A stretch of DNA of 64,000 nucleotides, from the NCBI GenBank assembly GCA_002269645.1, contig NIVC01001758.1:124001-188000 (forward strand), in the 5' to 3' direction. Positions 18,372 through 47,682 of the stretch are shown one piece after another. The position numbers and the translations under genes are program-made. This stretch comes from Macrostomum lignano. Its lineage: Eukaryota. Each line of letters opens with the position of its first letter. Position 1 is the stretch's first letter. The notes beneath the pieces are model-generated. The model made no database searches, was not told the origin of the DNA, and saw only the letters and a list, made by a program, of their open reading frames with translations.

Positions 18372-19693
18372 CTAAGAGAGACAAAAACCCTGAGCGGGCC
18401 AGACTGCTATTGTGAAGTTTCAAAGGACCCGAGGGCCGGATTCTAAGAAAAAAGCAACACATACAGAACAACATCTCCCTCAGCTCACCCCGCCAGTGAA
18501 TAAATCGGTCACCGCAGCCAGGGCAGTCTGCTGACTGAGATTGGCAGCCCGGTCATGAACCAGCCGGGAGCACCGGACGGCCAGCCGCATGTCCGGCTGG
18601 GTGGCGGCCGCGACTGGATCGTCCAGTAGAATCTCCGCCGGCATTGTGGCCTCAAAGTTTAAATCGTTGCGCACAATCAAATAGGGGAACACGCAGCCGC
18701 CAAACACGATGCAGGACAATGCCAGGTTGAATACGAACAGCCAGCGAATGAATGAGAAATACGAGGCGCATCCGGCCCCGAATTTGCCTTCAATAGAGCG
18801 GAAACTCGACCTGTACAGGCCCAGGGTGAACATGTCGAATGCGTTAGCGAATACGTCCGACAGGCTGGTGTGAAACTTTTCAATGGACTGCCTGGCTCGC
18901 TTCCTGGCTGGCAGCTTCACGGCTATGGTGCGCATCCGGTACTGCAGGTTCTGCCTGCGCAATGGGGGGGGAGGATTGAATATCACCCAATTAGAATCTA
19001 CAAAAATTACCCCTAATTAGGAATCAACCTAAATGTTTCTAAAAAGAATCTACCTAAATCTTCCTAATTAGAAATTTACCTAAACCTCCCTAATTAGGAA
19101 CCTACCTAAATCTCCTTAATTAGGAATCTACCTAAATCTTCCATAGTTAGAAATCAACATAACTCCCCCTAATTGCAAGCTACCTAACCCCCCAACAACC
19201 AATCTAACGCTAAAGAATCCCACACCGCAAAGATCCCAATCCCCACAGCGCACCTCTCCGACCGCCGGCCCTCCATATGCGCCACCATAGACGGCAGGGC
19301 GTCGATCTGGTCCTGCACCAGCTCAGCGGCTGTCTGCTGAGCGGCCACCGTGTCTCCGCTGCCGAACTCCGCCGGCGGCGGCGGCGGCTGAGCTGCCTCG
19401 CCCTCCTCCAGCTCCGCAGGCGAGGCGGCCTCGGCCGCCGACACCAGCAGCGGCGCTGCCGACGTGCTCGCTTCGGCCTCGGCAGCATCGACAACATCGT
19501 CGACATCCTCGCCAGCCTCCAGCAGCTCCTGCAGTCGGCGCCTGTCGCGTCGTTTCTTGCGAACGCTGAGCGAATTGAGGAATTTCCTGTCTGACTCGCC
19601 TGGCAGCGCTGAGACTATCGAATCGTCCAGTTGGTCCTGCTGGTTGAGCGGACTCGAACCAACGACCTCGTTCTCGTCGGGCGAAAATTCCAT
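10169..19693 (-). CDS. Transmembrane channel-like (TMC) protein, 805 aa; exons 19693-19254, 18954-18489, 17075-16866, 15446-15160, 14316-13893, 13520-13377, 12667-12363, 12287-12209, 10231-10169
   Basis: TMC motifs IEGKFGAGCASYFSFIRWL, LFTAWD, CWETYVGQQMY, EVLGLVYRQ..IGAFFCP, KSFRAS, PSRGCGPF. All eight introns are GT-AG and the exons sum to 2418 nt with no internal stop. Paralog not assignable by eye. Confidence 0.92.
10353..11908. mobile_element. Non-autonomous TIR DNA transposon (CCCGTGTGGCCA... ends, TA flanks; CACTA/EnSpm-like)
   Basis: ~34-bp TIR CCCGTGTGGCCATCYGATCAGGTTTTTCGCCCGG at both ends; both flanks read TATTA; internal 61-bp tandem array. Superfamily assignment is inference. 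Confidence 0.8.
10640..10995. repeat. 61-bp tandem repeat, ~6 copies, inside the TIR element
   Basis: Unit starts at 10640, 10701, 10762, 10823, 10884, 10945. Confidence 0.9.
11909..12200. repeat. (TAG)n/(CAG)n-type microsatellite
   Basis: Directly visible; source of the poly-L/T/V ORFs. Confidence 0.9.
12735..13260. repeat. 39-bp quasi-palindromic minisatellite (GGTAGAGATTTCCCGAATTTGGGGATCAAAATCCCAAAT)
   Basis: About 13 tandem copies with 31-bp variants and no spacers; lies in TMC intron 6. Confidence 0.92.
13620..13870. repeat. (GA)n and GA-rich low-complexity tract
   Basis: Directly visible in TMC intron 5. Confidence 0.9.
14335..15065. repeat. 34-bp minisatellite (ATTTATTCCCCAAATTATCCCATCGTCCCATATG)
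   Basis: Tandem copies fill most of TMC intron 4. Confidence 0.9.
15490..16775. repeat. 22-bp (GGCACTGATGGTGGYCCTAAWT) then 25-bp (GGCACTGATGGGGCTGGGGCAAAAT) minisatellites sharing a core
   Basis: Tandem copies fill TMC intron 3. Confidence 0.92.
17490..17775. repeat. ~33-bp minisatellite (GGGCATCAGCTGAGGGGGTGACCGATGGGTGTG)
   Basis: About 8 copies in TMC intron 2. Confidence 0.88.
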
Positions 19694-20714
19694 AGTTAGG
19701 TTTGGCACAGCTAGGATTTACAAGACTCGGCCAGATAAACGGGGCGTCTGAAAAATGACAAAATGAACACGATTGCATCGATCTGGTTCGGATAAGATAC
19801 TACACACACGCATACATATATAGAGACTGGCGTCCTCTAGGTACGCCTTCGCTCCCTACATCTCACTACCTTTCTCTCCCTATATCTCCCCATTTTTTCT
19901 TCTATCTAACTTGTTCACAACGCATCTATCTCCCATACTCTCCCTGCACCCTCTCCTTTCCTCTCTATAAATCTTACTCTCCCTGTAATCTCCCATACTC
20001 TCCCTGCATCTGTCTCCCTTAGTCTCCCTGCATCTGTCTCCCTTAGTCTCCCTGCATCCTCTCCTTTCCTCTGTCTAAATCTCTTACTCTTCCTGCATCT
20101 GTCACCCAGCATCTCTCTTACCTGATCCCTGCATCTACTTACCCTCCCTGCATCTCTCTTACTCTCCCTACATCTCTCTTACTCTCCCTGCATCTCTCTT
20201 ACTCTCCCTGCATCTCCCTTACTTTCCCTACATCTCTCTTACTCCCCCTGCACCTCTCTCTGTCTCCATTCTCTCCGTATTAAAAATCCGAAGAAATTAA
20301 CCGAGCCAGGCCCTTATCAACGCACGTTCCAATTTGCAGTCAAATTCGAAAGTACGCAAAATAGACAGAAAATTAGTGGCAGTCAGTGAAGTCTGTAATT
20401 TTGTTATCTCCAGAACTAACTAACGTGAGTGCAGAGATTCGAGCTGTTTAGCTATAGCTAAATGGCGGTTTTGCGAACTTGGAGGCAACGCACATGCAAG
20501 AGCATTATTCCATACCCGTAAATTATATGAAGAAAGTAGTCGGTTCTCTTTTCCAGCTCACAGCTTTCAAATATTAGTAGATTCTGATATTCCATTTTTG
20601 CATTTACGTCTCACCCCCATTTCAATATCTCACTCCCCATCTCATTATCTCACCCCCATTTACCAACCTCACTATCTCAGCATCCCAACTCCCACTCAGT
20701 ACCTGATCCTACCC

Positions 20715-22230
20715 CACTATCTCACTCTCCGTCTCACTATCTCACTCTCCGTCTCACTATCTCACTCTCCGTCTCACTATCTCACTCTCCGTCTATCTCA
20801 CTCTCCGTCTCACTATCTCCCTCTCCGTCTCACTATCTCCCTCTCCGTCTCACTATCTCCCTCTCCGTCTCACTATCTCACTCTCCGTCTCACTATCTCA
20901 CTCTCCGTCTCACTATCTCACTCTCCGTCTATCTCACTCTCCGTCTCACTATCTCCCTCTCCGTCTCACTATCTCCCTCTCCGTCTCACTATCTCCCTCT
21001 CCGTCTCACTATCTCACTCTCCGTCTCACTATCTCACTCTCCGTCTCACTATCTCCCTCTCCGTCTCACTATCTCCCTCTCCGTCTCACTATCTCCCTCT
21101 CCGTCTCACTATCTCACTCTCCGTCTCACTATCTCACTCTCCGTCTCACTATCTCACTCTCCGTCTATCTCACTCTCCGTCTCACTATCTCCCTCTCCGT
21201 CTCACTATCTCCCTCTCCGTCTCACTATCTCCCTCTCCGTCTCACTATCTCACTCTCCGTCTCACTATCTCACTCTCCGTCTCACTATCTCACTCTCCGT
21301 CTATCTCACTCTCCGTCTCACTATCTCCCTCTCCGTCTCACTATCTCCCTCTCCGTCTCACTATCTCCCTCTCCGTCTCACTATCTCACTCTCCGTCTCA
21401 CTATCTCCCTCTCCGTCTCACTATCTCACTCTCTGTCTTATTATCTCACTGTCAATCTATCTCACTCTCCGTCTCTGTCTCACTATCTCACTCTCTGTCT
21501 TATTATCTCACTGTCAATCTATCTCACTGTCAATCTATCTCACTCTCTGTCTTATTATCTCACTGTCAATCTATCTCACTCTCTGTCTTATTATCTCACT
21601 GTCAATCTATCTCACTCTCTGTCTTATTATCTCACTGTCAATCTATCTCACTGTCAATCTATCTCACTCTCTGTCTTATTATCTCACTGTCAATCTATCT
21701 CACTCTCCGTCTCTGTCTCACTATCTCACTCTCTGCCTTACTATCTCATTCTCAATTTATCTCAATCTCCGTCTCACTATCTCCCTCTCCGTCTCACTAT
21801 CTCACTCTCTATCTCTGTCTCACTATCTCACTCTCTATCTCTCTATCTCTCTGTCTCACTATCTCACTCTCTATCTCTCTGTCTCACTATCTCACTCTCT
21901 GCCTTACTATCTCATTCTCAATTTATCTCAATCTCCGTCTCACTATCTCCCTCTCCGTCTCACTATCTCACTCTCTATCTCTGTCTCACTATCTCACTCT
22001 CTATCTCTCTATCTCTCTGTCTCACTATCTCACTCTCTATCTCTCTGTCTCACTATCTCACTCTCTATCTCTCTGTCTCACTATCTCACTCTCTGTCTTA
22101 CTATCTCACTCTCTGTCTATCTCACTCTCAATCCAACTAATCTCACTCTCAATCTCACTATCTCACTCTCCGTATAATTATCTCACTCTCCGTCTCACTA
22201 TCTCACTCTCCGTCTCACAGTCTCACTATC
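20715..22230. repeat. 20-bp CT-rich minisatellite (ATCTCACTCTCCGTCTCACT) with higher-order patterning
   Basis: Directly visible; generates the spurious 575-aa ORF. Confidence 0.92.
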
Positions 22231-22849
22231 TCACTCGTATACAGTATCATTCCACCTATCCGAATATTTCTAGAAAAGGCACTTATAAAAACTCAATAAA
22301 AATAATAAATGGTCAAAGATGTTAGCACTTACCAGAATTAATACTCTACTGTATGATTAGCTCGTAATTAGTAGTTATATAGCAATCTCTCGTATCATAC
22401 ACCCGTTTAGAACATACTCTTAAATTGAGTTTAAAAGCCAGACGGATACAGACAGAATCTTTCTTGGCTCTGTACAACCCAAACTAAATAAGGAGCTTTT
22501 AGACTTAAATAATGTAGGAGCGTACAGTGACGCACGAATTCTTCTACAATCTAATCCTGAAGAGATAAGGAGCGACATGTACATAAATCTAACTGGTCAA
22601 GGCAAACAAAAATGGCTAATTTGCTACTCACAAAAATCCCGGATCTCTTGAAGAAGCCAAACCGGCAAAGAGCCGGCGGCTAATCTTTAAGAGAAACAGC
22701 AGATAGCTGCGCTTCACAATCTGCTGAACTGCAATTAATAAAGGATAAAGTTTCAATAAATATGGAGCATGACTCATGCGTGTACAAATTCACTATAAAA
22801 AACTGGGAGTCGTTAGTTTTTAATGCGGAAAACTAACAACTCATGAAAT

Positions 22850-23135
22850 GCTTCAGGGATGCCACTAGCCCTCAGCCAAGCTCCTCAGGGATGTCACTAG
22901 CCCTCAGTCAAGCTCCTCAGGGATGTCACTAGCCCTCAGCCAAGCTCTTCAGGGATGTCACTAGCCCTCAGCCAAGCTCTTCAGGGATGTCACTAGCCCT
23001 CAGCCAAGCTCTTCAGGGATGCCACTAGCCCTCAGCCAAGCTCTTCAGGGATGTCACTAGCCCTCAGCTAAGCTCTTCAGGGATGCCACTAGCCCTCAGC
23101 CAAGCTCTTCAGGGATGCCACTCTCAAATCAATTA
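22850..23135. repeat. 32-bp minisatellite (CTTCAGGGATGTCACTAGCCCTCAGCCAAGCT)
   Basis: About 8 tandem copies. Confidence 0.9.
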
Positions 23136-24123
23136 CTTCAGGGATGCCATCCTCCACTTATCACTTCAAAGACGCCTACAAGCTTATAAAAAAATGAATC
23201 CACAATAATCACAAGTACATGATGTAAGTTTAAAAATCTGTTTTGTTCATTTTTTATTCAATAGTGAGTAGGTGGGAACTGAAGTCACTAATATTACTGT
23301 CTGTCACGCTCGATAAACTACACTGTATAATGTTAGTATGATATAGACCAACACAGATTTTAATTTCAATAGAGGAAATATAATATAAACATGCTAATAG
23401 ATAAAATATACAATAAACATGCATCGTCTAAAAAAACTTATTTGATCTATGAAGACACGAACTTTGTTTAACCGTAACCATAGAAACGTTGCTATCTCAA
23501 GAGTTCCAAGTAAATAAATAATAAATCAAGCAGAATATTATATAGTTTGGCACACGCTTTAATAAGTATATATCCGAAAAAGCAGCTGTCTAAATTTCTG
23601 TTTAATAAAACAAAGTTAAAAGAAAAAACAGGGTAAACAGAAAACAAATAAAGTGCAGAAAAAAGTACACTAAAAGATGAATTAATTGTTCAACTAATAA
23701 GTCACTCAATTCAGGCCTAAATATTAATATAGAGATTGTAAAATAATAAACTAATAAAACAACTGCATCAAGCAATTCGGCCAAGCACGCAATTCTTTGT
23801 GGCACTGTGAACAGAACTTTATAATAAATAGTAATAACAGGACCAGATATTTATTGGTGATGAATTTGTTTGTTCTTTAAAAGACGCTACAAAAGGCAGC
23901 AAGATGTCAGCTATGAATGAAAAAGGAAAATAAAAGGAGCAAAAGGAAGCGCAGAAGATAAGGTATTGTGACTGACTATAAATAAATTTCCTGATTAATA
24001 AGCGAACCATTTCTCTGGGAATTGATATTTATAAAAACTTTTCCTCACCAATTCACTACTCTAAGTAGGCTTTTAAGCATATTTAGAAAATCTTTCATTC
24101 AAAATCAGCCAACAGGTTGCGGC

Positions 24124-27100
24124 TCACTCGTCGACAAACAGCAGGCCCTCGGGCGGATTGCCAGACAAGTCGACACCTTCGAGACCTTCGCCTGCGTAGC
24201 TCAACAAAGGCGACACTTCGGCATAGCGACGAGAGCCGCCCAGTGAGCTGGCTGACGCGGCGGTTAGCAGCCACTTTGTATGCAGTTCGAGCACATCTCG
24301 CCGGCAAGTCTCCGGGCAGTCCGAGCTGGAGCCCGGAGCATTTTTTAACGGCGAAAATTCTTCGGAGCGAGCGGCCTCCCACAAGGCGAAACTCGAGCCG
24401 GCGGCGGGGAATACGTCGAAGACGAATTTTTCAAATTTGATAGCGTTCTCAGTTGGCGGACTATGCACCTGATTGAGCCCGGAGAACGTGAGGGGGGACA
24501 TAAAAGGACACTAATAGTATTCATCAACACTTAACCTATTGTATGCGTATAAAATGGAGCAGTCGCTACTGTAAACGTTCTGTAAATATCTTGTTCAGGT
24601 AACTCTGTTATCGTTCATTGCGACCACGTTTTGTGCCTGTTATGTTCAGGATAATTATGTTTTAAGAGTCTTGTTTAGGGTCTCTAACGCGCTGAGCTCT
24701 CTTGTACTAAGGTTCCTGATTGGTCAGCACTTTTTTCCCCAATTTTCAGCCACCCATCAGTGCTTTCAAGATGGTTTTTTGGGTCTTACAACTCGTTTCA
24801 TGTTTTATGCAAAAAAACAAAACTATGCATGCTTTTTCAAAACTGCAAACGGCTGTAAAGGTTTTTGCTTTACTGCTAAAAGCATGCGTGTTCAGGGGTC
24901 TCACTGAAGAAAAAGCTTTGACTCGCAGTCTTTGACTCTGCGCTACTACGAGCTACTATGAACATGATGGTAGGCACTGGCAAGGCTCCGCGGATTTCAT
25001 CACCTTGGTGGCTGAAGCTTTGGTATTTCCTCAATGTCAAGTCGCCGTACAAGGAAAAGGACATCAGCCAGGATCCTGTCCGTTCATCGCTTGACTGGAA
25101 GCTACGGTTTCTGGAGGAGTATGCTGACTTTCTTAACAGTGGGAGGATCAAGTCAGGCAATCCTGGCCTGTCCAAGGAGAATTTCTTCTTGTGCTCTGGC
25201 CTTCTGTGTAAGGCATTTGCTAGACAATGAAGGCTTTTCCTATGTGCTTCTTTGTGTCACCTATCTGCCTCGATATGAAAAGCATCCGGTGATCCGGCAG
25301 TCTCGATGCAAATTTTCTCCACCTGCACAGCCGGAGCTTCTGGAAAAATGGATCTCTACGATTCCCCGAAAGTGGACAGCAGCAGAGTTGGAGAAGTTGC
25401 GCAGCGATCCAAACAAAGCACAACTACCGGATATGCTCACTGCGTTTTTAGAAAGGCTATTTGTAACCAACTCACGCCTCTCGGGACTCCAAATCGAGTC
25501 GTAAGCGCTCCGCATTTGCAAATGCAGATGGACAACAAAAGCGGCTGAAAAACTTCTAATGTCGTACCCAGCATCTTTCCAAACTACTTGATTTCCAACT
25601 TGAGCATACCAACGCGCCATTCTACTTGAGCAAAACTGTTCCTGAGGAGCGACCTACCACCATGACACCTGCTCAGACTCGACGAGAGAGTGCTATGCGT
25701 CGCTGTGAGGATCATTGTTCGAAGGCGCGATGTCATTCAAGGGGGGTTTCCATGATCTACTGGCGTTGGATATGCTCGCCACAAAGGGTTGCAAAATATT
25801 TTTTGCACTAAAGAAAGGACGGTTTCGTAATAATACTACTCAAAATTGGGGATTATAGAGTAGTTTTGAAGGCTTTGCGTTATCAATTAAAGAATAATGT
25901 TGCATTTTCCTATTCATTCAATGCTTTCCAATTCAGCTTTAACCCCTAAACTTGTATGCTGCCTTGACTAGTTAGTCCCTTCCTGGGGAGCGCAGCCAGC
26001 CAATAGGATTCCCTGACAGTGCCTTCGTGTTGTCCTCCGACTCTGGCTCTGTTCGGGAATCTTTTATGTCACCGTCGCAGTTGCTTGCAAGTTCGAACAG
26101 AACCAAAAGTGTGACGAGTGCAGAGAGCTGCTTCTTGAACAGGAAGAGGTGTTACCGTTGGATGTTGATTGGGTTCTGGCAATCATCAAGATCAACCAAG
26201 GTCTGTGCCAGCCAACGGGAACTAGCTTTCGCACTTATAATGCATTGCTGGAAAATCTTCGAGGAGATTCGACGGAAGGACTCACAGCTCAAGGCATTCC
26301 TGACTGTGCAGAAGCAGCAGCAGGTCTTCTATGGCCTTGTGGATGAGATGGCCAACGATGAAGGCTTTCTGGAGTTCTTTATACAGCTGGTGATTTGCAC
26401 GCACGGCCACGATGTGAAGACGGGCCTGGAAAAGGCTTTCTGCAACTGCATTATGAAAAATCTGGCTAAGGAGAGCTCTATAAATCGTGGAAGTTGAAGG
26501 AAGCAAAAGATCGCCAAGTTGTGTGGCCTCTCGCTTACGGTTGATGAACCATTTTTAAGGCTAAATATGTTTCAGGTAGATAAATATAGGTTCAATTGCC
26601 TTATGACTTAATTTACGCATGGGTTCTGTAATTATTCCTAAATACGCTTGTTCAGAGCCTGGCCCTATTTTTTCTTTTATTTTTATAAATTCTCATAATA
26701 AAGTCAAAATTCTTAGATCAGTATTAACAATGTCTCCAAACATAGCGCTTTTGTGTTGGTGTTTAAGACTCTCGTAAGAACCCTCTGAGTGATATTACGA
26801 GTAAATGCTCTATGTTGCTCACAAAATAGCTGGGAATGGCTGCCACACTGAGGTAAATGTGTGTGGGGAGCTTCCAGTCCAGTGATGCTATTTTAATGAG
26901 TCTCTGGTCCTGATGAACTTTTTTGGGATTATGGGGAATACGCTTGTAGAGATTGTCATTCTAGTGCACGGGTGAAGGATGTACAGAAAAAAGTTACTGA
27001 ATGAAACGAGTAACAAATTACTCACTCTGACTTACTTGACTTAGCTGCAGGGCTGTCCCGGAGGGGACACAGCGGGAAGGCGCGGGCGCCCATTCCGCTA

Positions 27101-30100
27101 AATTACTCACTCAAAATTGGATACAAATGTGCAACTGTAAATTGCCGCTCCGGCAATTCCAGAAAAGAATCGCCTACATCGAAAGTTTTTTTCCACGAGC
27201 TTCCCCAACAAGAGTCGGAGCTACTCCAAGAACGGCTACGGCGCATTCAACGAGAAGACTATATTCCAACCAGAGTTCTGACTGTGCTTCCAGCACTTTA
27301 CGGATGAAAATTTTGTTACCACATCGCAGGACTTGAATAAAAGTTACAAGCGTGATAGCGAAGGCCAACAATTGAGGAAGAAAAAGCTCCAGAAAAATGC
27401 AGTTCCCTCTGTTTTCATGGAACTTTCTGACCGGCTGCAGCCATCTGTTGCTAAAGCTAGAGGAATTTCTGCCACTGGAAGACTGGAAGCCGATCAGAAA
27501 ATAATGGACAAAGAGGCCATTGAGTTTCTGGCATCAGACGAGATCAGCTCACTGACTGATATCATGGAGCAGTTTGAAGGCAACCTAATTCTGACATATT
27601 TTGTTGTCCTCCAATAGCCATCTTCAATGACGTTTTGCTGTACTGACGTTGAGTTTAAAATATGTTAAGGGAAGGTGACATTGTTTTCCCAAATTCAGAA
27701 TCTACTAGCCTTACTCAAGTCTTGGACTTCGTCGAACACAACAATAAAAAACGAAACTGCTATTGACTGTCTGGGTAATTATCTGGATTTTATTGATTCT
27801 GTGGATCCACAATTGCAGAAATTTCCGTTTATTTGAGAACAACTTGATCTTTACCTACGAGTAATTAATCTATAGTGTTTGCCATGGTGCTAAGATCCGT
27901 CAGTACATCTTGCTATCAGGCACTATTGAACAAAGCAGTGCTGACACAACCCTCCATTAGAAGGTTGATTTCAATCCCTAGTCCTCTCTTTGTGGACCCT
28001 GGCGTCTCCGACAAGCCGTACATTCACCAGCAAAGTCAGAAACTGCCAATCGCAGAGTCCAACATGAATCTAATGTTCGATGAGATTCACTTCAACAGGC
28101 ATATCGAATATTCTGCCGGAGTTGTCGGAATGTAAGACGAAAATCCAGCTTCGACAATACTCTGCTTTATGGTCAAATCGATTGCTGGAAAGTTAAGCGA
28201 TGTACGAGGGCTGCTCAATAAGTTTCCGGAAAATTGCAGTTTTTACAAGTTATCTTTTAAAGATTTTTTGGGCAGAGCGGACCACAGATGTTTATAGTAT
28301 CTGTGGAGCGGACAAATATGTTAGGATATTATGCCTAAAAATTCAGCTTTCTGCACTTATATGCTGAATCTGAAATCTCAATCTGAAAAAAAGTCATGAC
28401 TTTCTACCAAACCTGACCCGACGTGACAAGTGAGCCATGTTCCTGCTGCTGTTTCACTCGGGCAAATATCTATCACAGTGCCCGCAGCAGCTTTAAATGG
28501 CGCTTGGAAGTGAAGCGAAAAGCCAGAGCGTCGTGTACGAGTGGTATGCTTGTTTTCGAACAGCCGCATTCGGTCTTGACGACGACCCATAGGAAGTACG
28601 TCCGAACTCGGCCATCACGCCAACAACTGTGGCTGCCACCAAGCGACTGCTGAACGAAGACAAGCAAGTGAGCACTCGTGAGCTCGAGCAGAATGTGGGC
28701 GTGTCAGATGGCACAATTAATTCCATTCTGCATAATCAGCTTGGTGTCAGAAAGCTGTCAGATGGGTGCCCCATCAGAGAGGACGGCAAGCCAAAAGGAT
28801 TCCTGACTTCAGTTTACGAGGGCAAGCTCTGCAATTACATGTTTGAGATTTCACCGACAGTCTGTGTAGCATGTTACATCTGCATGGTCGAAGACCACAC
28901 TGTGAGCTGTCCTGGCAGCTGGATTTCTAGATCAAATCAGGCTTCAGACAAAATTCGCCTTTGCATGTACAAATCACTGTTGGAAGATATTTGTGGCGAT
29001 TCGACGGAATGAGTCGTTAAGGAATGACCTGATTAATTAACTTAATGCAATGAACGTGCTGCTTTTCCGGGAGCACGAGACTTTCCCGGAGGAGGTTTTC
29101 CGCCGAGGTTTGCCAGCGCGAGCTTTTTCCGCAGCGAGTTTTTGAAAGCGCAAAGCTGTCTGCGATGCTCATGAACTATTTTAAGGAAGAGATCGATTAT
29201 CAGGCCCAGCTGATGACGAGAGCAAGTGCGGGCATTGTGACCACCACTGTGCTATTTTTGGTCAGCTGGTCTATAACTTTGCCGCAAAATTGCAGCTCAA
29301 CACTTGATGCTCTTCCTCCAAATCAAGTTCAGCTGCTATTGCCAATCGTCAGACTACTTGGAATAATGAATGCTTTAATAAGATCGACAAAAATGGGCAG
29401 CGAATTGGCGATTGGTGCCGCCAAGGTGTCTGCCCTGGCGACGCGTTTTGCAATCTCTGTTCGAGAACTTTCTCTATCAACCAGCACGGAATCACTGCGG
29501 TGAATCAACATGCTGCATCTAAGGAAAAGAATCAGTATGCAGAGAGCAACGCAAGGGTGCAACGCGTAACTCGGCGATGGAACGAAAATGGCTTGTCTGA
29601 AGACTTACCGCTGAGGTCCTTCCTGCGGGGCATCGAGCATAACCTGAAGAAGTAAGGCCATCAATGGAACCACATTGAAAAGCGTAGTGACTGAGAGTTG
29701 TTTGTTGGTTAAATCGAATCCAATTTTTTCCGGCTTTTTCCCGTAGATATGTCAACTGATGGTGCCAGTGATTTTTGTGTGGTTTTACAAACGCGAAATT
29801 TCATAACCGCTAAAATTTTTGCACTAAATCATATACGGCAGTCTTTTCGCGGTTGTGAAAGCAATCCATTTTTTTCTTAGAACTCTGTGGCTGGCAGCTT
29901 ATTTTCACAAGTGTCAATCACTTTAACAAAAATGTAATTTTTCTTTGAGTATAAAATTTGCACTCGAATAAAGACTATCATTTCCAATTAATATCCAACT
30001 ATTAATTACTTCAATGAACTACACTTAGTAAATTAAATCGTATAAATTAAACTCAACTTTGAGCACTGTGTTGTAATAAGCGCGACAGAAACTGCACGGT

Positions 30101-35437: not shown

Positions 35438-35509
35438 GCTCGATGGACTTTGCGCTTGAAAGTTTTAGCAATCATCGATTCGCGACTTGATAAACTCAGG
35501 CTGTCCTAG

Positions 35510-37395: not shown

Positions 37396-37417
37396 CAAAC
37401 ATCAATAATCAATAAAA

Positions 37418-37983: not shown

Positions 37984-38018
<35 letters not shown>

Positions 38019-38027
38019 GAGACACTA

Positions 38028-38104
<77 letters not shown>

Positions 38105-38115
38105 CTAAGACACTA

Positions 38116-38188
<73 letters not shown>

Positions 38189-38191
38189 CTA

Positions 38192-38226
<35 letters not shown>

Positions 38227-38243
38227 AAGACAGAAACTAAGAC

Positions 38244-38326
<83 letters not shown>

Positions 38327-38369
38327 CTAAGACAGACAGACAGACAGACAGAAAGACAGAAACTAAGAC

Positions 38370-38418
<49 letters not shown>

Positions 38419-38987
38419 GACAGAGAGAGCAAGTCATCACAGGCGCTCACTTGCTGCCGGTGCTGTCTCTGATAGCTCCTGTGCACCCTATTGGCCATTC
38501 TCTCGTACTCCTCCTGAGTCGGGAACGGGCCCTCGCCAGACCGCCTAGCCTGAGCGGCCGCCTCCTCCCAGTAGAAGCGGTAGAACCTGTCCCGTTCGGA
38601 CTGCTGCCTGCCCTGATGATAATCATAATGCCTGTGCGAGCTGAAGGCCGGATCGCTAGACGGTCCGCCGAAGCCTCCAAGCCCAAGCTGACGATCGTAG
38701 GTCCTTCGACTGTCCGGTTTGCTCAATACGCTATAGGCTTCGTTAATTTTAACAAACTGCTCGTGCGAGTCCGTACTGGCCGAATTCGAATCCGGATGCC
38801 ACAGTTTTGATTGTTGAATAAACGCTTCGCGAATTTCTTTAACAGTAGCGTTATGACTCAGGCCCAGTGTCTGGTAATGATTCTTTGACGACGCCCCATG
38901 CTGCCAGCGCCAGATGCAACGACTAGGTGGCGCCGAGGCGGCGCGGCGCCCAACAAAAACAAAAGCTGTCAATTTGTGCAGTAACAT
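37418..38987 (-). CDS. DnaJ (type C) protein with C-terminal hydrophobic segment, DNAJC4-like, 263 aa; exons 38987-38451, 37672-37418
   Basis: J domain [46 protein letters not shown]. Basic N-terminus resembles a mitochondrial presequence (inference). C-terminal [17 protein letters not shown]. Phase 0 GT-AG intron. Confidence 0.88.
37945..38425. repeat. (AGAC)n microsatellite
   Basis: Directly visible in the DnaJ intron. Confidence 0.95.
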
Positions 38988-39029
38988 TTGTCAACTTGCT
39001 GTTTTGAAGGCTTACATGGACCCCTGACC

Positions 39030-40060
39030 CCCACCCCTCAGTTCTAAGATTGACCCCTCAGTTCTAAGATTGACCCCTCAGTTCTAAGATTGACCCTTCA
39101 GTTCTAAGATTGACCCCCTCAGTTCTAAAATTGACCCCTTCAGTTCTAAGATTGACTCCTTCAGTTCTAAGATTGACCCCCTCAGTTCTAAGATTGACCC
39201 CCTCAGTTCTTAGATTGACCCCCCAGTTCTAAGATTGACCCCCTCAGTTCTTAGATTGACCCCCTCAGTTCTAAGATTGACCCCTCAGTTCTAAGATTGA
39301 CCCTTCAGTTCTAAGATTGACCCCTCAGTTCTAATATTGACCCTTCAGTTCTAAGATTGACCCCTTCAGTTCTAAGAGTGACCCTTCAGTTCTAAGATTG
39401 ACCCTTCAGTTCTAAGATTGACCCCCTCAGTTCTTAGATTGACCCCCTCAGTTCTAAGATTGACCCCTCAGTTCTAAGATTGACCCTTCAGTTCTAAGAT
39501 TGACCCCCTCAGTTCTAAGATTGACCCCCTCAGTTCTAAGATTGACCCCCTCAGTTCTAAGATTGACCCCCTCAGTTCTAAGATTGACCCTTCAGTTCTA
39601 AGATTGACCCCCTCAGTTCTAAGATTGACCCCTCAGTTCTAAGATTGACCCTTCAGTTCTAAGATTGACCCCCTCAGTTCTAAGATTGACCCCCATCAGT
39701 TCTAAGATTGAACCCCATCAGTTCTAAGATTGACCCCCATCAGTTCTAAGATTGACCCCCTCAGTTCTAAGATTGACCCTTCAGTTCTAATATTGACCCT
39801 TCAGTTCTAAGATTGACCCCTTCAGTTCTAAGATTGACCATTCAGTTCTAAGATTGACCACCCCAGTTCTAAGATTGACCCCCTCAGTTCTTAGATTGAC
39901 CCCCTCAGTTCTAAGATTGACCCCTCAGTTCTAAGATTGACCATTCAGTTCTAAGATTGACCCCCTCAGTTCTAAGATTGACCCCCATCAGTTCTAAGAT
40001 TGACCCCCTCAGTTCTAAGATTGACCCCCATCAGTTCTAAGATTGAACCCCATCAGTTCT
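39030..40060. repeat. 20-23-bp minisatellite (TTGACCCCCTCAGTTCTAAGA)
   Basis: Tandem array abutting the DnaJ 5' end. Confidence 0.93.
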
Positions 40061-40919
40061 ATCACTCCAAGTCACTCTAAGATTATGAGATAAGCATGTG
40101 AACTCTGCATGCAAGAAACTAGAAACGTATTATTTAAAAACGAGCCATGCAAGGGCCTATTATAGAAGTTTAGCAGTTTTATTTCAAATAAATGTGCATG
40201 AATATTATAATGTGAATTGAGTAGTACACAATCAATCAATCAATCAGTAAGCGTTTAGAAAAAAAAACGACGAGCCAACAAAGATTCGCAGCAGAACAAA
40301 GACATAATTATAAAAAGCTCTATAAGCATAGAGACAATCAGAAATGTTTCATATTTCTCAACATCGCAATATGTTCGATCTGCAGTTGCATCAGCTCGAT
40401 AAAAATTAATAACATAATGAGACACCGCTTCATCGAGAGTACACAATTCTCATTAACTGTCTTCGCTAATTAAGATTAAATTAAGATAGTTTTTAAATAA
40501 CAGCATCGAAACGATTTGGGTAAAGTTCGTACTAAACAAAAAACTTTTATTGTTAATTCCTTAATAAGGTTACTCTGATTACATTTTTATTGTTATTATT
40601 ATGGTATGCACAGATATTGTTAATTGAATTTGGCAACTGTTGCGTAAAAATAATTTCTTGATTAATTATTACTAATATTTTTCTTATTGAATATTATACT
40701 GAAAATATAAAGCCTACTGGAAGTAGCACAGTAGCAATATAAATAAAACACGCAGAAGAAGCCAAGCCTCTGGGATATGGGAGTTTTAATCTGGGATATT
40801 CTGTTCCTAATGCCTTTCTTGCAGTCTGGAATACAAAGGGAAAAGACTTCATTTAAAGAAATCCTGTCCGTTAATGAATGAGTGAATCGCTAGCAGACAA
40901 AACCAGTCGGATTCAATAA

Positions 40920-43900
40920 TCAGATGCGCAGGTTGGCCACCTTCTGCTCGATGGTGTCAGTGTCCCACACGACCAGGCGGCCGTCAACTCCCACGGTGCT
41001 GAATCGGCGAACACGGCTGGCGTCGCTTACAATCACGGCCAGTTGGCTGCGGGGTGACGGTTGGTGAATGAGTGGGTAAGTGAGTGAGTGAGCGGGTGAG
41101 TGAGTGAGTGAGTGAGCGAGCGAGTGAGTGAGCGAGTGAGTGAGTGAGTGAGTGAGTGAGTGAGTGAGTGAGTGAGTGAGTAAGTGAGTGTGTGAGCGAG
41201 TGAGTGAGTGAGTGAGTGAGTGAGCGAGTGAGTGAGTGAGTGAGCGAGTGAGTGAGTGAGTGAGCGAGTGAGTGAGTGAGTGAGCGAGCGAGTGAGTGAG
41301 TGAGTGAGTGAGTGAGTGAACGAGTGAGTGAGTGAGCGAGTGAGTGAGTGAGTGAGTGAGTGAGTGAGTGAGTGAGTAAGTGAGTGTGTGAGTGAGTGAG
41401 TGAGTGAGTGAGTGAACGAGTGAGTGAGCGAGTGAGTGAGTGAGTGAGCGAGTGAGTGAGTGAGTGGGTGAGTGAGTGAGTGAGTGAGTGAGTGAGTGAG
41501 TAAGTGAGTGTGTGAGCGAGTGAGTGAGTGAGTGAGTGAGTGAGCGAGTGAGTGAGTGAGTGAGCGAGTGAGTGAGTGAGTGAGCGAGTGAGTGAGTGAG
41601 TGAGCGAGTGAGTGAGTGAGTGAGCGAGCGAGTGAGTGAGTGAGTGAGTGAGTGAACGAGTGAGTGAGTGAGCGAGTGAGTGAGTGAGTGAGTGAGTGAG
41701 TGAGTGAGTGAGTGAGTAAGTGAGTGTGTGAGTGAGTGAGTGAGTGAGTGAACGAGTGAGTGAGCGAGTGAGTGAGTGAGTGAGCGAGTGAGTGAGTGAG
41801 TGGGTGAGTGAGTGAGTGAGTGAGTGAGTGAGTGAGTGAGTGAGTGAGCGAGTGAGTCAGTCAGTAAGTGAGTGAGTGTTTTAGTGAGTGTTTTAGTGAG
41901 TGAGTGAGTGAGTGAGTGAGTGTGTGAGTGAGTGAGTGAGTGAGTGAACGAGTGAGTGAGCGAGTGAGTGAGTGAGTGAGCGAGTGAGTGAGTGAGTGAG
42001 TGAGTGAGTGAGCGAGTGAGTGAGTGAGTGAGTGAGTGAGTGAGTGAGTGAGTAAGTGAGTGTGTGAGTGAGTGAGTGAGTGAGTGAACGAGTGAGTGAG
42101 CGAGTGAGTGAGTGAGTGAGCGAGTGAGTGAGTGTGTGAGTGAGTGAGTGTGTGTGTGAGTGAGTGAGTGAGTGAGTGAGTGAGTGAGTGAGCGAGTGAG
42201 TGAGTGAGTGAGTGAGTGAGTGAGTGATTGAGTGAGTGAATGAGTGAGTGAGTAGGATTGTCCGTCAGTTAATGAAGAGAGTGAGTCATAAAGTCAGTCA
42301 GTGAGTCAGTGAATTAGTCACTGTCAATGAGTCAGTTGGTCAGTAATAGCAAGAACGCGCAGAGAGGAGAAACAGATGACAAAACAGATGGAGATTGGGA
42401 AAGGAAATTTCAAGATAAAGGAGAGTGCAAGAGTGAAAAGGCAGAGGGAGAATGGAGAATAAAAGCTGAGAGAAGAGTATATGACTTCAATTCCTTAGCC
42501 AAGCCCTTACTTGATAGAGTTCTGATGAACGGTGGTCAATTTCTCAACACTATCCTCCGTGGCCATTCGGTCCATATTGCCGAACATAGTCTTAGCCGTC
42601 ATTTTGGTCGAGCCGCCAGACTGATCGGCCGACATGTTGAGCTGGCCGGCGATGGACAGACTGGCTGAGCCGGCCTCGTAGCGGAACACCACCGGGTAGC
42701 AGTCGTGTCCGGCGGCCACCAGGGCCGTGTCGCTAAGCCAGCAGCAGGTCAGCATTGGCAGCATAGCGAAACGGAGCACGGCCAAGGTTTGAGTCGAGCC
42801 ATTGGCAACGGACACGGAAGAATCGTGCGACACCCAGGCCATCAAGCTGCCGTCCCCATTGAAAGCAACGTCACGGATCCAACCGCCTTGAGTGGGCGGA
42901 AAACGGTTTTTTCTATTAAGGAAATCTGTCTAGAAAACTTAACAAAATAGCAGGCAACACCGTCATAAATGTCTTTTTTAGTCTCCCAGGATTCGCTCAA
43001 ATGGATTTCTAGTTTCCTGCGAAAATGATAGAGCTTCAAGAATTCAGCACAATGAAAACAGAATACTTTAGTGTTACTCAGTGGCCATTCTAGCTGGTCT
43101 ATCAATATCTATTCTATCTAGTCTATTCGTGTCTTTTCTATCTGTGCTATCAAAATCTTGATTCTATCTGGTCTATTCGTGTCTATTCTATCTGGTCTAT
43201 CAATATCTATTCTATCTGGTCTATTCGTGTCTATTCTATCTGGTCTATCAATATCTATTCTATCTAGTCTATTCGTGTCTTTTCTATCTGTGCTATCAAA
43301 ATCTTGATTCTATCTGGTCTATTAGTGTCTATCCTGGCTGGTCTATCAATATCTATCCTGCCTGGTCTATCAGTATCTATCCTGTCTGGTCTATCAGTAT
43401 TTTTCTATTATTTAGTATTTTTCTTTGCCTGGGCTAAACCCTCCAGTCCTTCAGTGCAAGGAACAACACACTAATTAGAAGACAGGTATAAAAACAGCAG
43501 TTTCATAATTTCATATAGGGGTGGCAATACGTCAACTGTATGAACAACACATCAGTCGCATGCAGAGGTGATTGTCGATTTTCAAAAATCTAAAAATCTA
43601 AGTACTAGAAAAGGCTGGTAAGGAACAGGTTAAAATAGACCGATGCTACGGTAATGCAAGAACCGAGCAAGCGGACACCGTTTAGATGCTTATAAAAAGA
43701 CAACATTCACTAACCGTACACGGGCTCAATAGTCCAAGAGGGGATTCGCACAGCAATAATAACTAATAATAATTTACACCTTTTTTAAAAACACAACACG
43801 TTTTAATAGGAAAGGAAATAAAAATTGTGTTATTTAACTTACCGCGATAAGTATCTGAGTCTAAACAGGTAAGGATGTCAACGTTTTATTAAAAAAAATT

Positions 43901-46049
43901 ATTTAAGATTTCCCAAGTCATTTTGGCAAGTTTAGAAACGGCTTAAATTGTTGTCCTGAGTACGAGTTGGATACTTGCAATTAAAGCTGTCAAAAATGCA
44001 AAATAACTCTAATTTGATTGACACAAGTCAACCGCTCGTTCTGAGATTCGATACCTAATCTACCGGATAAATACCCGCCTTCATTCGGGTCAATACCCTC
44101 CTTCCCTCGGGTCAATACCCTTCCCTCAGGATCGATACCCTTCCCCTCAGGATCGATAACCTTCCTCTCAGGATCGATACCCTTCCTCTCAGGATCGATA
44201 ACCTTCCCCTCAGGATCGATACCCTTCCCCTCAGGATCGATACCCTTCCTCTCAGGATCGATACCCTTCCTCTCAGGGTCGATACCCTTCCTCTTAGGGT
44301 CGATACCCCTCCCCTCAGGATCGATACCCCTCTCCTCAGGATCGATACCCCTCTCCTCAGGATCGATACCCCTCCCCTTAGGATTGATACTCTCTCCCCT
44401 CAGGATCCCTTAGGGAAAATACCCCTCGCCAGGAATAGTGGCGTTACCTCCAGTGTGATAATACCCCTTCAATGATCTATACAGATGTCGTAAGGTTACC
44501 CACTTAATTCAACTGCTTAAGATGACCATTGGCGCATTTAAAAAAACAATAGAAAATAACCCTCAGCAACTCACTGCCTCCGTTGGTGTACTCGGCCATA
44601 ACGTTGCTAAATTTCATGTTGCCGCCCCAGCAGGTGGCGGCCGGTTTCTCGTCGGCCTCTTTTAGATAGGCGCTAACAATTCTAGCTTTGAAATCGGTGG
44701 CCCCTACGGCCAATAGGCAATTGTTCGGGTGCCAGGCTAGGCAAGTCACAGTAGACTTGAACGGCTTTTTGATCTGCTTGCACACCCACCAGTTGTGCTC
44801 CTGAAGGTCAGATGTTAAGTGCTAATTAGTAGATCAAATTAGTAGATCAGGTAAGTAGTATAAAGCATCACTATTCTGCTATTCAACTGTTGGATTGTAA
44901 AAAACTTAAACAGACACAGGGATGAAAGGGAATCCAACGTAGATACAAAGGAGGATCCTAATAAAAGAGGATTCCTGGAATGCTACAGAGAAAAGGCGAT
45001 TCCTGGAATCCTACACAGATAAAAGGGGATTCCTGGAATTCTATATAAAGATAAAAAGGCATTCCTGGAATCCTACAGAGATAAAAGGGGATTCCTGGAA
45101 TCCTACAGAGATAAAAGGGGATTCCTGGAATCCCAAAGAGATATAACCTTTGGGGATTCCTGGAATCCTATATAAAGATAAAAAAGGTATTCCTGGAATC
45201 CTACAGAGATAAAATGGGATTTCTAGAATGCTACAGAGATAAAAGGGGATTCCTGGAATCCTACAGAGATAAAAGGGGATTCCTGGAATCCTACAGAGAT
45301 AAAGGGGATTCCTGGAATCCCAAAGAGATATAACCTTTGGGGATTCCTGGAATCCTATATAAAGATAAAAAAGGTATTCCTGGAATCCCACAGAGATAAA
45401 AGGGGATTCCTGGAATCCTTTATAGAGATAAAAGGGAATTCCTAGAATGCTACAGAGATAAAAGGAGATTCCTGGAAGCCTTCAGAGATAAAAGGGGATT
45501 CCTGGAATACTACAGAGATAAAAGGGGATTCCTGGAATCCTACAGAGATAAAAGGGAATTCCTGGAATCCTACAGAGATAAAAGGGAATTCTTGGAATCC
45601 TACAGAGATAAAAGGGGATTCCTGCAATCCTAAAATGAAATCAGTAATAAAGAGCTACTCACAGGTTCAAAGTGGCACACGGACACCAGTTTAGCGCCGC
45701 TGCCAACAGCAAATTTATTCTCCAATGGCGACCATTTAACCACTGTAGCGGCCCGATCAATTCGTAGCAGCACCAGGGTTGGCCGAAATTGGCCAGTGGA
45801 ATCGCGAGTCCAGACGTGGGCATTCCTATCGGCACTGGCCGTGACAATGCGGTCAGTATTGGCGGCCCAGTCGATGCTGGTGACCCGTTCGCTGTGCTCC
45901 TCCAGTGACTGGAGCTTCTCCCATTTTTGGCCAGATTTTTTATAAATGTCCACAGTGTTGGAATTGAGCGACAGGGCCAATTGGCTGCAGTCTTTATTAA
46001 AGCTGTGACAAGTGATTGGAACTGGGCCAAATGAGAGCTCTTCAATCAT
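40920..46049 (-). CDS. ARPC1A: Arp2/3 complex subunit 1 (p41, WD40), 371 aa; exons 46049-45663, 44800-44575, 42886-42511, 41046-40920
   Basis: [128 protein letters not shown]. Phases 0/1/2 are consistent. Invertebrates have one ARPC1 gene, so A versus B is nominal. Confidence 0.95.
41075..42255. repeat. (GAGT)n microsatellite, ~1.2 kb
   Basis: Directly visible in ARPC1 intron 3. Confidence 0.95.
43100..43405. repeat. Degenerate TCTATTCTATCTGG-type minisatellite
   Basis: Visible repeats in ARPC1 intron 2. Confidence 0.75.
44090..44410. repeat. 21-22-bp minisatellite (TCAGGATCGATACCCTTCCTC)
   Basis: About 14 copies in ARPC1 intron 2. Confidence 0.9.
44960..45635. repeat. ~30-bp minisatellite with palindromic core GGATTCCTGGAATCC
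   Basis: Tandem copies fill ARPC1 intron 1. Confidence 0.92.
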
Positions 46050-47682
46050 TGTTTGGCTTCTTTTTAAAAAAATTAGAGTCTCTGCAGAGTCAAAGTATGA
46101 TGTTAAATAAAAAAATTAGTATAAAATTATAATCCCCTGTATATAAACTTTAATTTCTATCACCCTGACAACAGAGACATCAAAAACTTTATTCTACTTA
46201 CTATTTGCTAGTGTCTAAACTGAGGAAAAAATCCTTGTCTATAGTACTTTTGTATGCCTCTGTCTCCAGAGTATAATGCTTATAACAAAATATAATATAT
46301 TATGCCAATGACAAATAAAAGGCTCCAATCATTATTGTCATAGCTAATACTGAATATCAAGGCACTGAAAGAGAACATTTTACCATGGCAATAATGGTCT
46401 ATTACTAAATAGAAATGTTCTCTTTTGGCAGGACATTGCTCTTGCACACAACTCAAAAGACTATCTAGTCCTTCTAAGATACTAGAATTCCTTTTTTGGC
46501 TAAAGGAGATATGGCTACCTAATAGCCTAAATGCAAACCTACTCAATTATAGCATTTAGACATTTAAAATCCCATGCAAACACTATTACCTAATAGAGTT
46601 TAAGCACACTGAAAGCTATTATTGAGATAAAATAGGCAAAAACATCTAAATACTATCTAAAAAGTTTGCTAAGCTTTTTGATAGTTGCAAGAAAAAGCAA
46701 TAGCAACCCATACTCCTGAAAATGCTGTTTTGTGGGGAAAATTCTCGCATGCAACAAGGTACCAGGCAGCCATGCGCTATGTGAACAGTGTGCAGCCAAG
46801 AGGTTGAAACTTTTTTGGCACATGCCACGTGCAACAGTTTTGGCATAAATGACAATATTTTTTTTATTTTAAACTGAATGTCTCACAATAATAGTATAAT
46901 GTACATAGTCATCTTTTTGTACATCTGCAATAAGGAAAACAATTTTTTGCCTGATGCAGTACAATTTTAAGGCATTTATAAGGCATTATATAATAAATAC
47001 AAACAATAGTATTTTGTTAAAGTAAATTTCTTTTTTGTTTCATTTTGTTAAATTGGGGGAAGAAAGAAAGGAGAGGAGGAGAAAAGGAAAAGAAAGGAAA
47101 GAGAAGAGAGAGAGGGGAAAGGGAGAGAAAGAGAAAGAGAAAAAAAGAGAAAAAGGCAAGAAAAGTAATATACAAAGTGAAAATTAAGCTACAATTGGGG
47201 GAACTAATCCACAATTAAGAGGAACTAAGTTGCAATTGGGGGAACTAAGTTGCAATTGGGAGGAACTAAGTTGCAATTGGGATGTCGATAAACTAAGTTG
47301 CACTGGACAAGTGAAATTTTGAGGTTGGGCATATATGTACCATGTTATCCAAATGGTAAGAAGACAAGACACAAATGTCTAAAGTTTGAATAGCTACTTG
47401 GATTGCATATAAGATAATTAATTAGATTAATTGAAAAAATATTAAGTATATCAAATTATATAATATTATGTAATATAGGTTTAAATATGTAAATGTAACA
47501 TTGATTGATATTAATGATATACATATACTATTTGTTGTTATATATGTATATTTATTTATATTCATTGAATTTGATTTTACATTCAATCAGATTCATATTA
47601 CTGAGTATACAAGTTCCTTATTTTTTTTCAATTTCAATTTATCCCTTAATTTCAACTATTCACTTCATAGCATTATCTGTCC

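Follow-up and report, generated by a model that had tools for sequence, protein, structure and literature searches.

We are inclined, at slightly better than even chances, to read three adjacent genes of Macrostomum lignano, ARPC1, DnaJ and UAP1, as one trans-spliced operon, with the neighbouring TMC gene separate. What is observed directly is how the genes are built and spaced, how much repeat the locus contains, and that annotated 5' boundaries lie against AG dinucleotides; spliced-leader (SL) addition at the AGs, co-transcription and a single promoter are inferred. The window, that is the whole stretch of 64,000 nucleotides that we analyzed, comprises bases 124001-188000 of contig NIVC01001758.1 and is 100% identical to the GenBank contig. 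Its minus strand carries four co-oriented genes in the order ARPC1, DnaJ, UAP1, TMC, as the first-pass annotation had claimed, and all four are confirmed; the chance of one common orientation for four genes is 1/8.

The coding region of ARPC1 (Arp2/3 complex 41 kDa subunit; 40920-46049, minus strand, as are all features below) encodes 371 aa in four exons (46049-45663, 44800-44575, 42886-42511 and 41046-40920), and all three of its introns consist of 39-84% tandem repeat. The J-domain protein gene (37418-38987; exons 38987-38451 and 37672-37418) encodes 263 aa with a Pfam DnaJ match, the J domain being accompanied by a C-terminal hydrophobic segment, and its intron is a (CAGA)n array. UAP1 (UDP-N-acetylglucosamine pyrophosphorylase; 24124-35437) has four exons (35437-35087, 34155-33757, 33264-32890 and 24468-24124) and 489 aa; our model is 100% identical to GenBank PAA64360.1, and the third intron spans 8.4 kb, is filled with transposons and contains 16% tandem repeat. 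The TMC-family gene extends from the ATG at 19693 to an approximate 3' limit at 8500. It was identified through PF07810 matches in the exons near 14000 and 13450, and its paralog is annotated as an 805-aa TMC.

An exact look-up in the database returned identical sequences for the predicted N-termini of ARPC1, DnaJ and UAP1. By homology search, ARPC1 exon 1 as query matched no M. lignano protein, and the TMC N-terminus gave no matches, low-complexity words having probably swamped the candidate list. The GenBank proteins of UAP1, DnaJ and ARPC1 bear consecutive accessions (PAA64360, PAA64361 and PAA64362) and are all 5'-partial; no mention of the gene ids Mlig032797, Mlig028627 and Mlig006292 was found in published text or supplements. 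No further CDS is called by GenBank between the three genes, and an ORF scan of the gaps returned no additional gene. ARPC1, DnaJ and UAP1 are therefore adjacent in the sense used for M. lignano operons, on the same strand and with no opposite-strand gene between them. GenBank lists no CDS within 10 kb upstream of ARPC1. Rfam and tRNA scans of the window detected a tRNA-Met only, and the SL sequence itself (suffix ...TTATTGCATG) is absent from the window.

A second paralogous locus keeps the order ARPC1-DnaJ-UAP1(-TMC). Since the copies differ by 1-3% throughout (exons are 99-100% and unique gap parts 96-99% identical), this conservation of gene order is uninformative about selection, and a paralog comparison for promoter-like conserved blocks had no power.

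The stop-to-ATG gaps, first given as about 1.9, 2.0 and 4.4 kb and largely filled with minisatellite, measure 1,932, 1,980 and 4,430 nt, of which tandem repeats occupy 56%, 76% and 50%. To count as an operon in M. lignano, trans-spliced genes must be neighbours on the same strand and lie less than 1 kb apart once repeats are subtracted; the paper that uses this limit also states that repeats inflate the operon spacers of this species and split assembled transcriptional units (PMC8629364). Measured from the ARPC1 stop to the AG at 39000-38999, gap 1 (39001-40919) spans 1,919 nt and retains 843 nt of non-repeat sequence; gap 2, from the DnaJ stop to the AG at 35456-55 (35457-37417), spans 1,961 nt and retains 477 nt. 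Both values, obtained by subtracting only tandem repeats found by TRF, are upper bounds, as they include the 3' UTRs, and both fall below 1 kb. Gap 3, from the UAP1 stop to the CAG at 19750-48 (19750-24123), spans 4,374 nt and retains 2,193 nt, or about 1.9 kb past a 3' UTR that would end near the AATAAA at 23855; no interspersed repeat was detectable in its unique parts in a low-power search. The four-gene trans-spliced operon that was originally proposed thus stands on spacing for ARPC1-DnaJ-UAP1 and fails for TMC. The threshold of 1 kb is a statistical classification, not a proof.

Gap 1 hosts a 21-mer array at 39034-40061 and poly(A) hexamers at 40790, 40591, 40551 and 40183. Gap 2 hosts 20-mer arrays at 36456-37395 and 35503-36046, and its sole poly(A) hexamers lie at 36352 and 36289. 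When the 3' UTRs are removed, the unique spacer shrinks to roughly 100-700 nt in gap 1 and about 270 nt in gap 2, which places both on the shoulder of the published mode at about 100 nt and not on the mode itself. Judged by raw distance, all three gaps exceed the spacers typical of parasitic-flatworm or Caenorhabditis elegans operons, which measure some 100-300 nt and at most 1 kb. We also noted that the unique 843 and 477 nt could house internal promoters.

These figures bear on a second reading, which we consider clearly less probable but still a sizeable possibility, namely that the locus consists of three or four independent SL-trans-spliced genes, each driven by a separate promoter located in the unique sequence of its upstream gap, the array and its flank acting as outron and no polycistron being formed. 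About 60% of trans-spliced M. lignano genes lie outside operons, which hold about 15% of the genes of the species (PMC8629364), and at most 2 kb of upstream sequence is enough for promoter activity in this animal (PMC5730564). The raw gaps of 1.9-2.0 kb are also far above the mode, and the unique sequence left after subtraction adds to this case. However, each terminator and promoter would have to share the few hundred unique nucleotides that remain beyond the 3' UTRs, and the published distance distribution, which is bimodal, puts such pairs in the operon mode (PMC8629364). Repeat density points in the same direction. In gaps 1 and 2 it is like that of six out of seven measured introns (39-84%) and unlike that of the 18 kb upstream of ARPC1 (11-16%), so that the gaps resemble introns and not intergenic sequence.

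In support of trans-splicing, the first-pass annotation had pointed to an AG just upstream of each ATG. All the AGs it listed are present where it placed them, at the spacings it gave. As a sign of SL acceptors, however, they are not above chance: an AG occurs 5-20 nt upstream of 641 of the 981 minus-strand ATGs, a fraction of 0.65, and all four genes are expected to have one with a probability of 0.18. Because it is found at 65% of the ATGs of the strand, such an AG is uninformative. The published motif [T/C]TNCAG is fitted by CTGCAG of ARPC1 and TTTCAG of TMC (19753-48), and not by TTCAAG of UAP1, AAACAG and TGACAG of DnaJ, or TCCTAG, the acceptor first chosen for TMC. Only some 44% of M. 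lignano SL sites carry this motif (PMC8629364), so a site lacking it may still be an SL site.

More telling are the annotated transcript ends, as the TBONE pipeline set the gene boundaries of this assembly where SL-trimmed reads form peaks (PMC5730564, PMC8629364). The ARPC1 protein PAA64362.1 (381 aa) is 5'-partial, and its CDS starts at 46079, 2 nt past the AG at 46083-82. The reading frame is open further upstream; the transcript end is therefore fixed to a window of 3 nt abutting the AG (46079-46081, with 46081 being the first base past the AG). This 5' boundary is identical in both paralog copies. The probable SL acceptor of ARPC1 is thus the one at 46082-46083 (gactCTGCAG|AGACTC), initially listed as an alternative, and not the AAAAAG at 46061-60 that had been preferred. 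For UAP1, the proposed acceptor at 35455-35456 (aaactttcAAG|CGCAAAG) is the one that the annotation favours: PAA64360.1 is 494 aa long, 5'-partial and begins QSPSSM, which places its CDS start at 35452, again 2 nt past the AG, and the transcript end within 35452-35454 (the first base past the AG is 35454); here too the frame is open further upstream, and the boundary recurs in the paralog copies. The acceptor is AAG, departing from the usual CAG. The chance of a transcript end being pinned against an AG in this way is about 0.19 per gene, or about 0.036 for ARPC1 and UAP1 jointly. The 5'-partial boundaries of these two genes beside AGs have the look of SL-defined transcript ends in this assembly, and from sequence and annotation SL acceptors are very probably present directly upstream of both ATGs. 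These boundaries fit independent trans-spliced genes equally well as an operon.

They fit poorly with conventional genes that have their own capped TSS and a short unspliced 5' UTR or a cis-spliced non-coding exon, and no SL. This account may draw on the chance-level frequency of the AGs, and it could find possible cis donors in GTAAG at 39015 and GTRAG at 36079. However, the annotated ARPC1 and UAP1 transcripts end within 3 nt of the AG with no upstream exon, GTAAG 39015 is separated from the AG by no more than some 10 nt, which leaves no room for an intron, and the donor at 36079 is deleted in the paralogous copy L002. Gaps 1 and 2 contain one sense-strand GTRAG donor each, and this near-absence counts against cis-spliced 5'-UTR exons. 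The core promoter would, moreover, need to sit within repeat sequence, since the minisatellite extends to 47-66 nt from the ATG. We regard conventional genes as highly improbable. The claim that arrays lie close to the acceptors held up: the distance from array to AG is 33 nt for DnaJ and 47 nt for UAP1, with the arrays on the upstream side, and several true splice sites likewise have an array nearby.

The 5' end of DnaJ is less clear-cut. The acceptor first assigned to it, at 38999-39000 (ttcaaaaCAG|CAAGTT), finds no support in the annotation, although no other near-upstream AG would leave ATG 38987 of the genomic sequence within this copy's mRNA. The annotated 5' end lies at 38966-68, 19-21 nt downstream of that ATG. 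The protein PAA64361.1 (256 aa, 5'-partial) begins AFVFVG, giving a CDS start at 38966, and the AG at this boundary (38966-38967, aaattgaCAG|CTTTTG) lies inside the ORF first proposed. The boundary is ragged, shifting by a few nt among three copies: the L002 paralog begins FVFVG, exactly past the AG equivalent to 38966-38967, and in the present copy no AG directly precedes it. Splicing at 38966-38967 would leave an mRNA with no in-frame AUG, as the sole one is removed.

The 3'-terminal AUG of the flatworm SL reportedly serves as initiator methionine, according to Cheng et al. 2006. That study is cited in PMC12582326 and PMC9851317. Splicing at TTACAG, which both DnaJ paralogs carry, would put the SL AUG in frame (M-HKLTAFV...); the present copy has CTG at that position, hence no acceptor. 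Joined at the ARPC1 acceptor, the SL AUG would open a 3-codon uORF, and at the UAP1 acceptor a 101-codon out-of-frame ORF.

TMC is most likely a separate transcription unit, 4.4 kb beyond UAP1. The proposal that it is the fourth cistron, resolved at the AG just upstream of ATG 19693, seems improbable to us. In its favour, TMC is co-oriented, the UAP1-TMC order is kept in the paralogous locus, half of gap 3 is tandem repeat, and in parasitic flatworms chimeric gene models point to cistrons lying as much as several kb apart (PMC12582326). Against it are a repeat-adjusted gap of about 1.9-2.2 kb, above the limit of 1 kb, and the structure of the paralog, whose CDS (L002 25135) begins at an ATG and is not 5'-partial. 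Because this CDS is complete at the 5' end, the transcript model includes the in-frame TAA located 27 nt upstream (window 19720-18). The model therefore reaches beyond the AG at 19711-19712 (aaatccTAG|CTGTGCC) and is uncut at CCTAG, leaving the acceptor initially suggested for TMC unsupported. A better candidate, for cis- or trans-splicing, is the AG at 19748-19749 (gtcatttttCAG|ACGCC), which is pyrimidine-rich, fits the motif and sits 54 nt upstream of the ATG. Furthermore, GenBank has no TMC CDS in this copy, whereas every intact copy of the locus has annotations for the three housekeeping genes. A TMC channel is expected to be narrowly expressed, unlike ARPC1 or UAP1, which also counts against a four-gene operon.

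If ARPC1, DnaJ and UAP1 form one unit, RNA polymerase II would start somewhere upstream of ARPC1 and traverse all three genes. Cleavage and polyadenylation of the upstream cistrons would take place in the unique sequence of each gap, and the 35-nt SL, which ends in AUG, would be spliced onto the AG just before each coding region, capping the downstream mRNAs. The spacers of 1.9-2.0 kb would then be ordinary short intercistronic regions swollen by arrays, which are tolerated there as they are in introns.

Such a unit would not differ in kind from the operons described in the same species, which uses a single 35-nt SL (Wudarski et al. 2017, PMC5730564; Ustyantsev & Berezikov 2021, PMC8629364). 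These likewise contain conserved housekeeping genes that follow one another on a single strand and have their 5' ends at AGs, and their spacers are inflated by tandem repeats and shorter than 1 kb after subtraction; operons of three genes are the second commonest size (18% of operons; PMC8629364). The AAG acceptor of UAP1 departs from their [T/C]TNCAG motif. Parasitic flatworms (Schistosoma mansoni and cestodes) also have a single, non-specialised SL that ends in AUG, and their operons, mostly of two genes, are defined by raw spacers of at most 300 bp (with 1,000 bp as the upper extreme), the S. mansoni median being 99 bp (PMC12582326), as compared to raw spacers of 1.9-2.0 kb here. These operons are treated in Protasio 2012, Tsai 2013 and Calvelo et al. 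2025 (PMC12582326). The SL2 operons of Caenorhabditis elegans follow a like logic, with 3'-end formation upstream and trans-splicing of the downstream cistron, but they rely on a dedicated SL2 and have spacers of about 100 nt. As M. lignano has one SL, SL type cannot mark downstream cistrons. Wide spacers in C. elegans operons, hybrid operons included, are frequently a sign of internal promoters, the main rival explanation at the present locus.

SL trans-splicing, operons and repeat-inflated spacers are already published for M. lignano, and the ARPC1 and UAP1 models in the public annotation already stop at the acceptors described above, so that the locus adds little new biology. It serves as a worked example of two points: where flatworm genomes are rich in repeats, operons are poorly recognized by raw intergenic distance, and 5'-partial CDS boundaries in GenBank records of Mlig_3_7 can stand in for SL sites. 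Should the three-gene unit be real, it would offer a convenient locus, as its three genes are well conserved, arrays fill both spacers and the paralogs provide natural acceptor variants, where M. lignano transgenesis could probe the coupling of 3'-end formation and trans-splicing across kilobase repeats.

We also considered the 123 sense-strand GTRAG in the gap 3 array as a bar to read-through and rejected them, as the true UAP1 intron 1 has 23. A function for the kilobase minisatellites within the polycistronic pre-mRNA, in place of a role as passive filler, is very doubtful. If they had one, an array could act as a spacer and make trans-splicing independent of upstream 3'-end formation over a distance of more than 1 kb. 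Alternatively, the 20-mer array ahead of the weak UAP1 acceptor could offer an SL-recruiting or decoy platform, as 18 tandem sense-strand CTACAG motifs, which fit the SL-acceptor consensus, are found within 35503-36046.

Four minus-strand gene models were built by joining stop-to-stop reading frames at GT..AG junctions: ARPC1 (46049-40920; 4 exons, 371 aa), a J-domain protein (DnaJ; 38987-37418; 2 exons, 263 aa; Pfam DnaJ, 1.6e-20), UAP1 (35437-24124; 4 exons, 489 aa; Pfam UDPGP) and a TMC-family gene (ATG at 19693; TMC domain in exons near 14000 and 13450). The window is metazoan DNA and identical to its GenBank locus, NIVC01001758.1:124001-188000 of assembly Mlig_3_7; the full-length UAP1 protein is a 100% match to Macrostomum lignano PAA64360.1. 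The first-pass annotation had read some or all of these genes as a candidate trans-spliced operon, with a spliced-leader (SL) acceptor AG just upstream of each ATG. We confirmed the four co-oriented genes, the gap sizes (stop-to-ATG distances of 1,932 nt for ARPC1-DnaJ, 1,980 nt for DnaJ-UAP1 and 4,430 nt for UAP1-TMC) and all AG positions that it listed. As a signal, however, co-orientation and AGs near ATGs are within chance: four genes share an orientation with a probability of 1/8, and an AG lies 5-20 nt upstream of 65% of all minus-strand ATGs, which gives an 18% chance that all four have one. Of seven cis acceptors here, six are CAG and one is AAG; their C-rich tracts are weak. The proposed AAAAAG, CAAG and CCTAG are not especially acceptor-like.

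M. lignano has a single SL of 35 nt (CGGTCTCTTACTGCGAAGACTCAATTTATTGCATG) with the acceptor motif [T/C]TNCAG; 30% of its genes are trans-spliced and ~15% lie in operons (PMC8629364). Because operon genes in this species are spread apart by repeats, an operon is called where the repeat-subtracted distance is < 1 kb; the mode of these distances is ~100 nt (PMC8629364). After removal of TRF arrays, the stop-to-acceptor distances, which include 3' UTRs, fall from 1,919 to 843 nt (ARPC1-DnaJ), from 1,961 to 477 nt (DnaJ-UAP1) and from 4,374 to 2,193 nt (UAP1-TMC). The intercistronic parts estimated from poly(A) hexamers are roughly 100-700 nt, ~270 nt and ~1.9 kb, respectively. The first two gaps are therefore inside the published rule at any UTR length and the third is outside it. 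In the GenBank annotation, the spaces between ARPC1, DnaJ and UAP1 and the 10 kb before ARPC1 contain no CDS.

Tandem repeats make up 26% of the window and are unevenly distributed. They cover 39-84% of six of the seven measured introns (16% of UAP1 intron 3) and 50-76% of the three gaps (56% of the first, 76% of the second), compared with 11-16% of the 18 kb upstream of ARPC1 and 5% of the retroelement region. The first two gaps thus have an intron-like repeat density, unlike the region upstream of ARPC1, which leans toward an operon. Sense-strand consensus donors are nearly absent from these gaps, and the single donor of the second is deleted in the paralogous copy at locus L002. This scarcity weakens the alternative of cis-5'-UTR exons, and conventional genes without SL are very unlikely. 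A candidate three-gene operon, ARPC1-DnaJ-UAP1, with TMC separate, is the most likely reading, in which we have moderate confidence. Genome-wide catalogues of M. lignano already include units of this type, and multi-gene precursors are 7% of assembled units there (PMC5730564); the operon idea was a reasonable inference from raw sequence, and leads to known biology in an annotated genome.

Gene boundaries in Mlig_3_7 were cut by the TBONE pipeline at SL-trimmed read peaks (PMC5730564). The annotated products have 381, 256 and 494 aa (ARPC1, DnaJ and UAP1), versus 371, 263 and 489 aa as rebuilt. We predicted that they are 5'-partial ORFs extending to the transcript end, and wrote out the N-termini beforehand. 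All predicted sequences (ten residues plus ARPC1; DnaJ from AFVFVG; QSPSS plus UAP1) matched exactly, to PAA64362.1, PAA64361.1 and PAA64360.1, all three labelled 'partial'. As the frame is open upstream of the first annotated codon in all three genes, each transcript 5' end is fixed to a 3-nt window, which an AG adjoins by chance with a probability of ~0.19 per gene. For ARPC1 (46079-81, minus strand) the end adjoins CTGCAG (AG 46083-82), which fits the published motif; this had been listed as the alternative, and the preferred AAAAAG (46060-61) is not at the boundary. For UAP1 (35452-54, minus strand) it directly follows the proposed CAAG (AG 35456-55). Both boundaries are annotated identically in the paralog copies. 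We regard this as good but second-hand evidence of SL trans-splicing of ARPC1 and UAP1 at these AGs. It is equally compatible with three independently promoted, SL-trans-spliced genes, the main rival, which we consider possible but less probable than the three-gene operon.

In the L002 UAP1 copy (~9996-10000, against 35455-35458 in the window) CAAG is changed to CATG and the AG is lost, with the annotated boundary unchanged, probably an effect of multi-mapped SL-trimmed reads; this copy may not be trans-spliced at the site. The last four bases of the SL are also CATG. The consensus SL-acceptor motif, as CTACAG, occurs 18 times on the sense strand of a 20-mer array directly upstream of UAP1 (35503-36046), which precedes the weak AAG used by the annotation.

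The DnaJ CDS is annotated from 38966, 21 nt downstream of the ATG at 38987, and starts TAFV.. and FVFV.. in the other two copies; the AG of TTGACAG|C (38967-66) lies exactly at the boundary in the L002 copy only. Splicing at this AG would leave the mRNA without an in-frame AUG, and the SL AUG would open a 36-codon out-of-frame ORF. A productive mRNA of this copy would therefore have to retain ATG 38987, being spliced at AG 39000-38999 or starting further upstream. The proposed acceptor is compatible with this, although the annotated boundary lies elsewhere; the latter may be a minor internal acceptor, as described in other flatworms. Both paralogs differ from this copy by a single base (ATGTTACAGCAC versus ATGTTACTGCAC): the triplet is CTG here (38979-38981) and CAG at L002 (~6778-6780) and at L003 (~16723-16725), a second paralogous locus. 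The paralogs carry ATGTTACAG|CAC, in which TTACAG is a consensus SL acceptor. We offer only as a hypothesis that it would place the terminal SL AUG in frame (M-HKLTAFV...), consistent with initiation at the SL AUG, which is known in flatworms; the CTG copy would have to depend on its genomic ATG. UniProt models from an older assembly start LQHKLT. A consensus donor, GTAAG, is present in all three copies (39011-39015), only ~10 nt upstream of the DnaJ AG, a distance too short for an intron between them.

At a paralogous locus, TMC lies 4.8 kb after UAP1 and its CDS begins at the ATG without being 5'-partial. Its transcript model must hence extend at least as far as the in-frame stop (TAA) 27 nt before the ATG, past the proposed CCTAG (19711-12), which argues against that acceptor. 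A much better candidate acceptor, judged by its motif, is TCATTTTTCAG (AG 19749-48), 54 nt upstream of the ATG, which may take either the SL or a cis exon. Nothing that we saw positively supports membership of TMC in the operon and, with 2,193 nt left after repeat removal, a four-gene unit is improbable. The GenBank annotation of this copy has no TMC CDS, which might be explained by an LTR retrotransposon (~2800-8065, minus strand; protease, reverse transcriptase, RNase H and integrase in Ty3/gypsy order, with Pfam matches on separate pieces). The element lies directly downstream of TMC or within its 3' part.

An inverted second ARPC1-DnaJ(-UAP1) copy, L003, lies ~90 kb away at the contig end (NIVC01001758.1:275724-300466). 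It is 98-100% identical, with small indels throughout its UAP1 exons, and could be a genuine recent duplication, or else a haplotig or an artefact of assembly. In UAP1 intron 1, an array (34455-35100) that begins at the donor site of exon 1 contains 23 sense-strand copies of this donor (CAGGTGAGA), so a real intron tolerates serial consensus 5' splice sites. Intron 3 (24469-32889; 8.4 kb), described as transposon-filled, contains, besides a 40-mer array (31538-32778), remnants of plus-strand ORFs that may be decayed DNA transposons. Its THAP-domain match (27282-27614) is weak and sub-threshold (E 0.0025; 19 bits versus a 23.9-bit cut-off), and 28593-29009 resembles a mariner-type helix-turn-helix by eye, without a Pfam match. 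The sole Rfam/ARAGORN match in the window is a plus-strand tRNA-Met (CAT) at 58212-58283.
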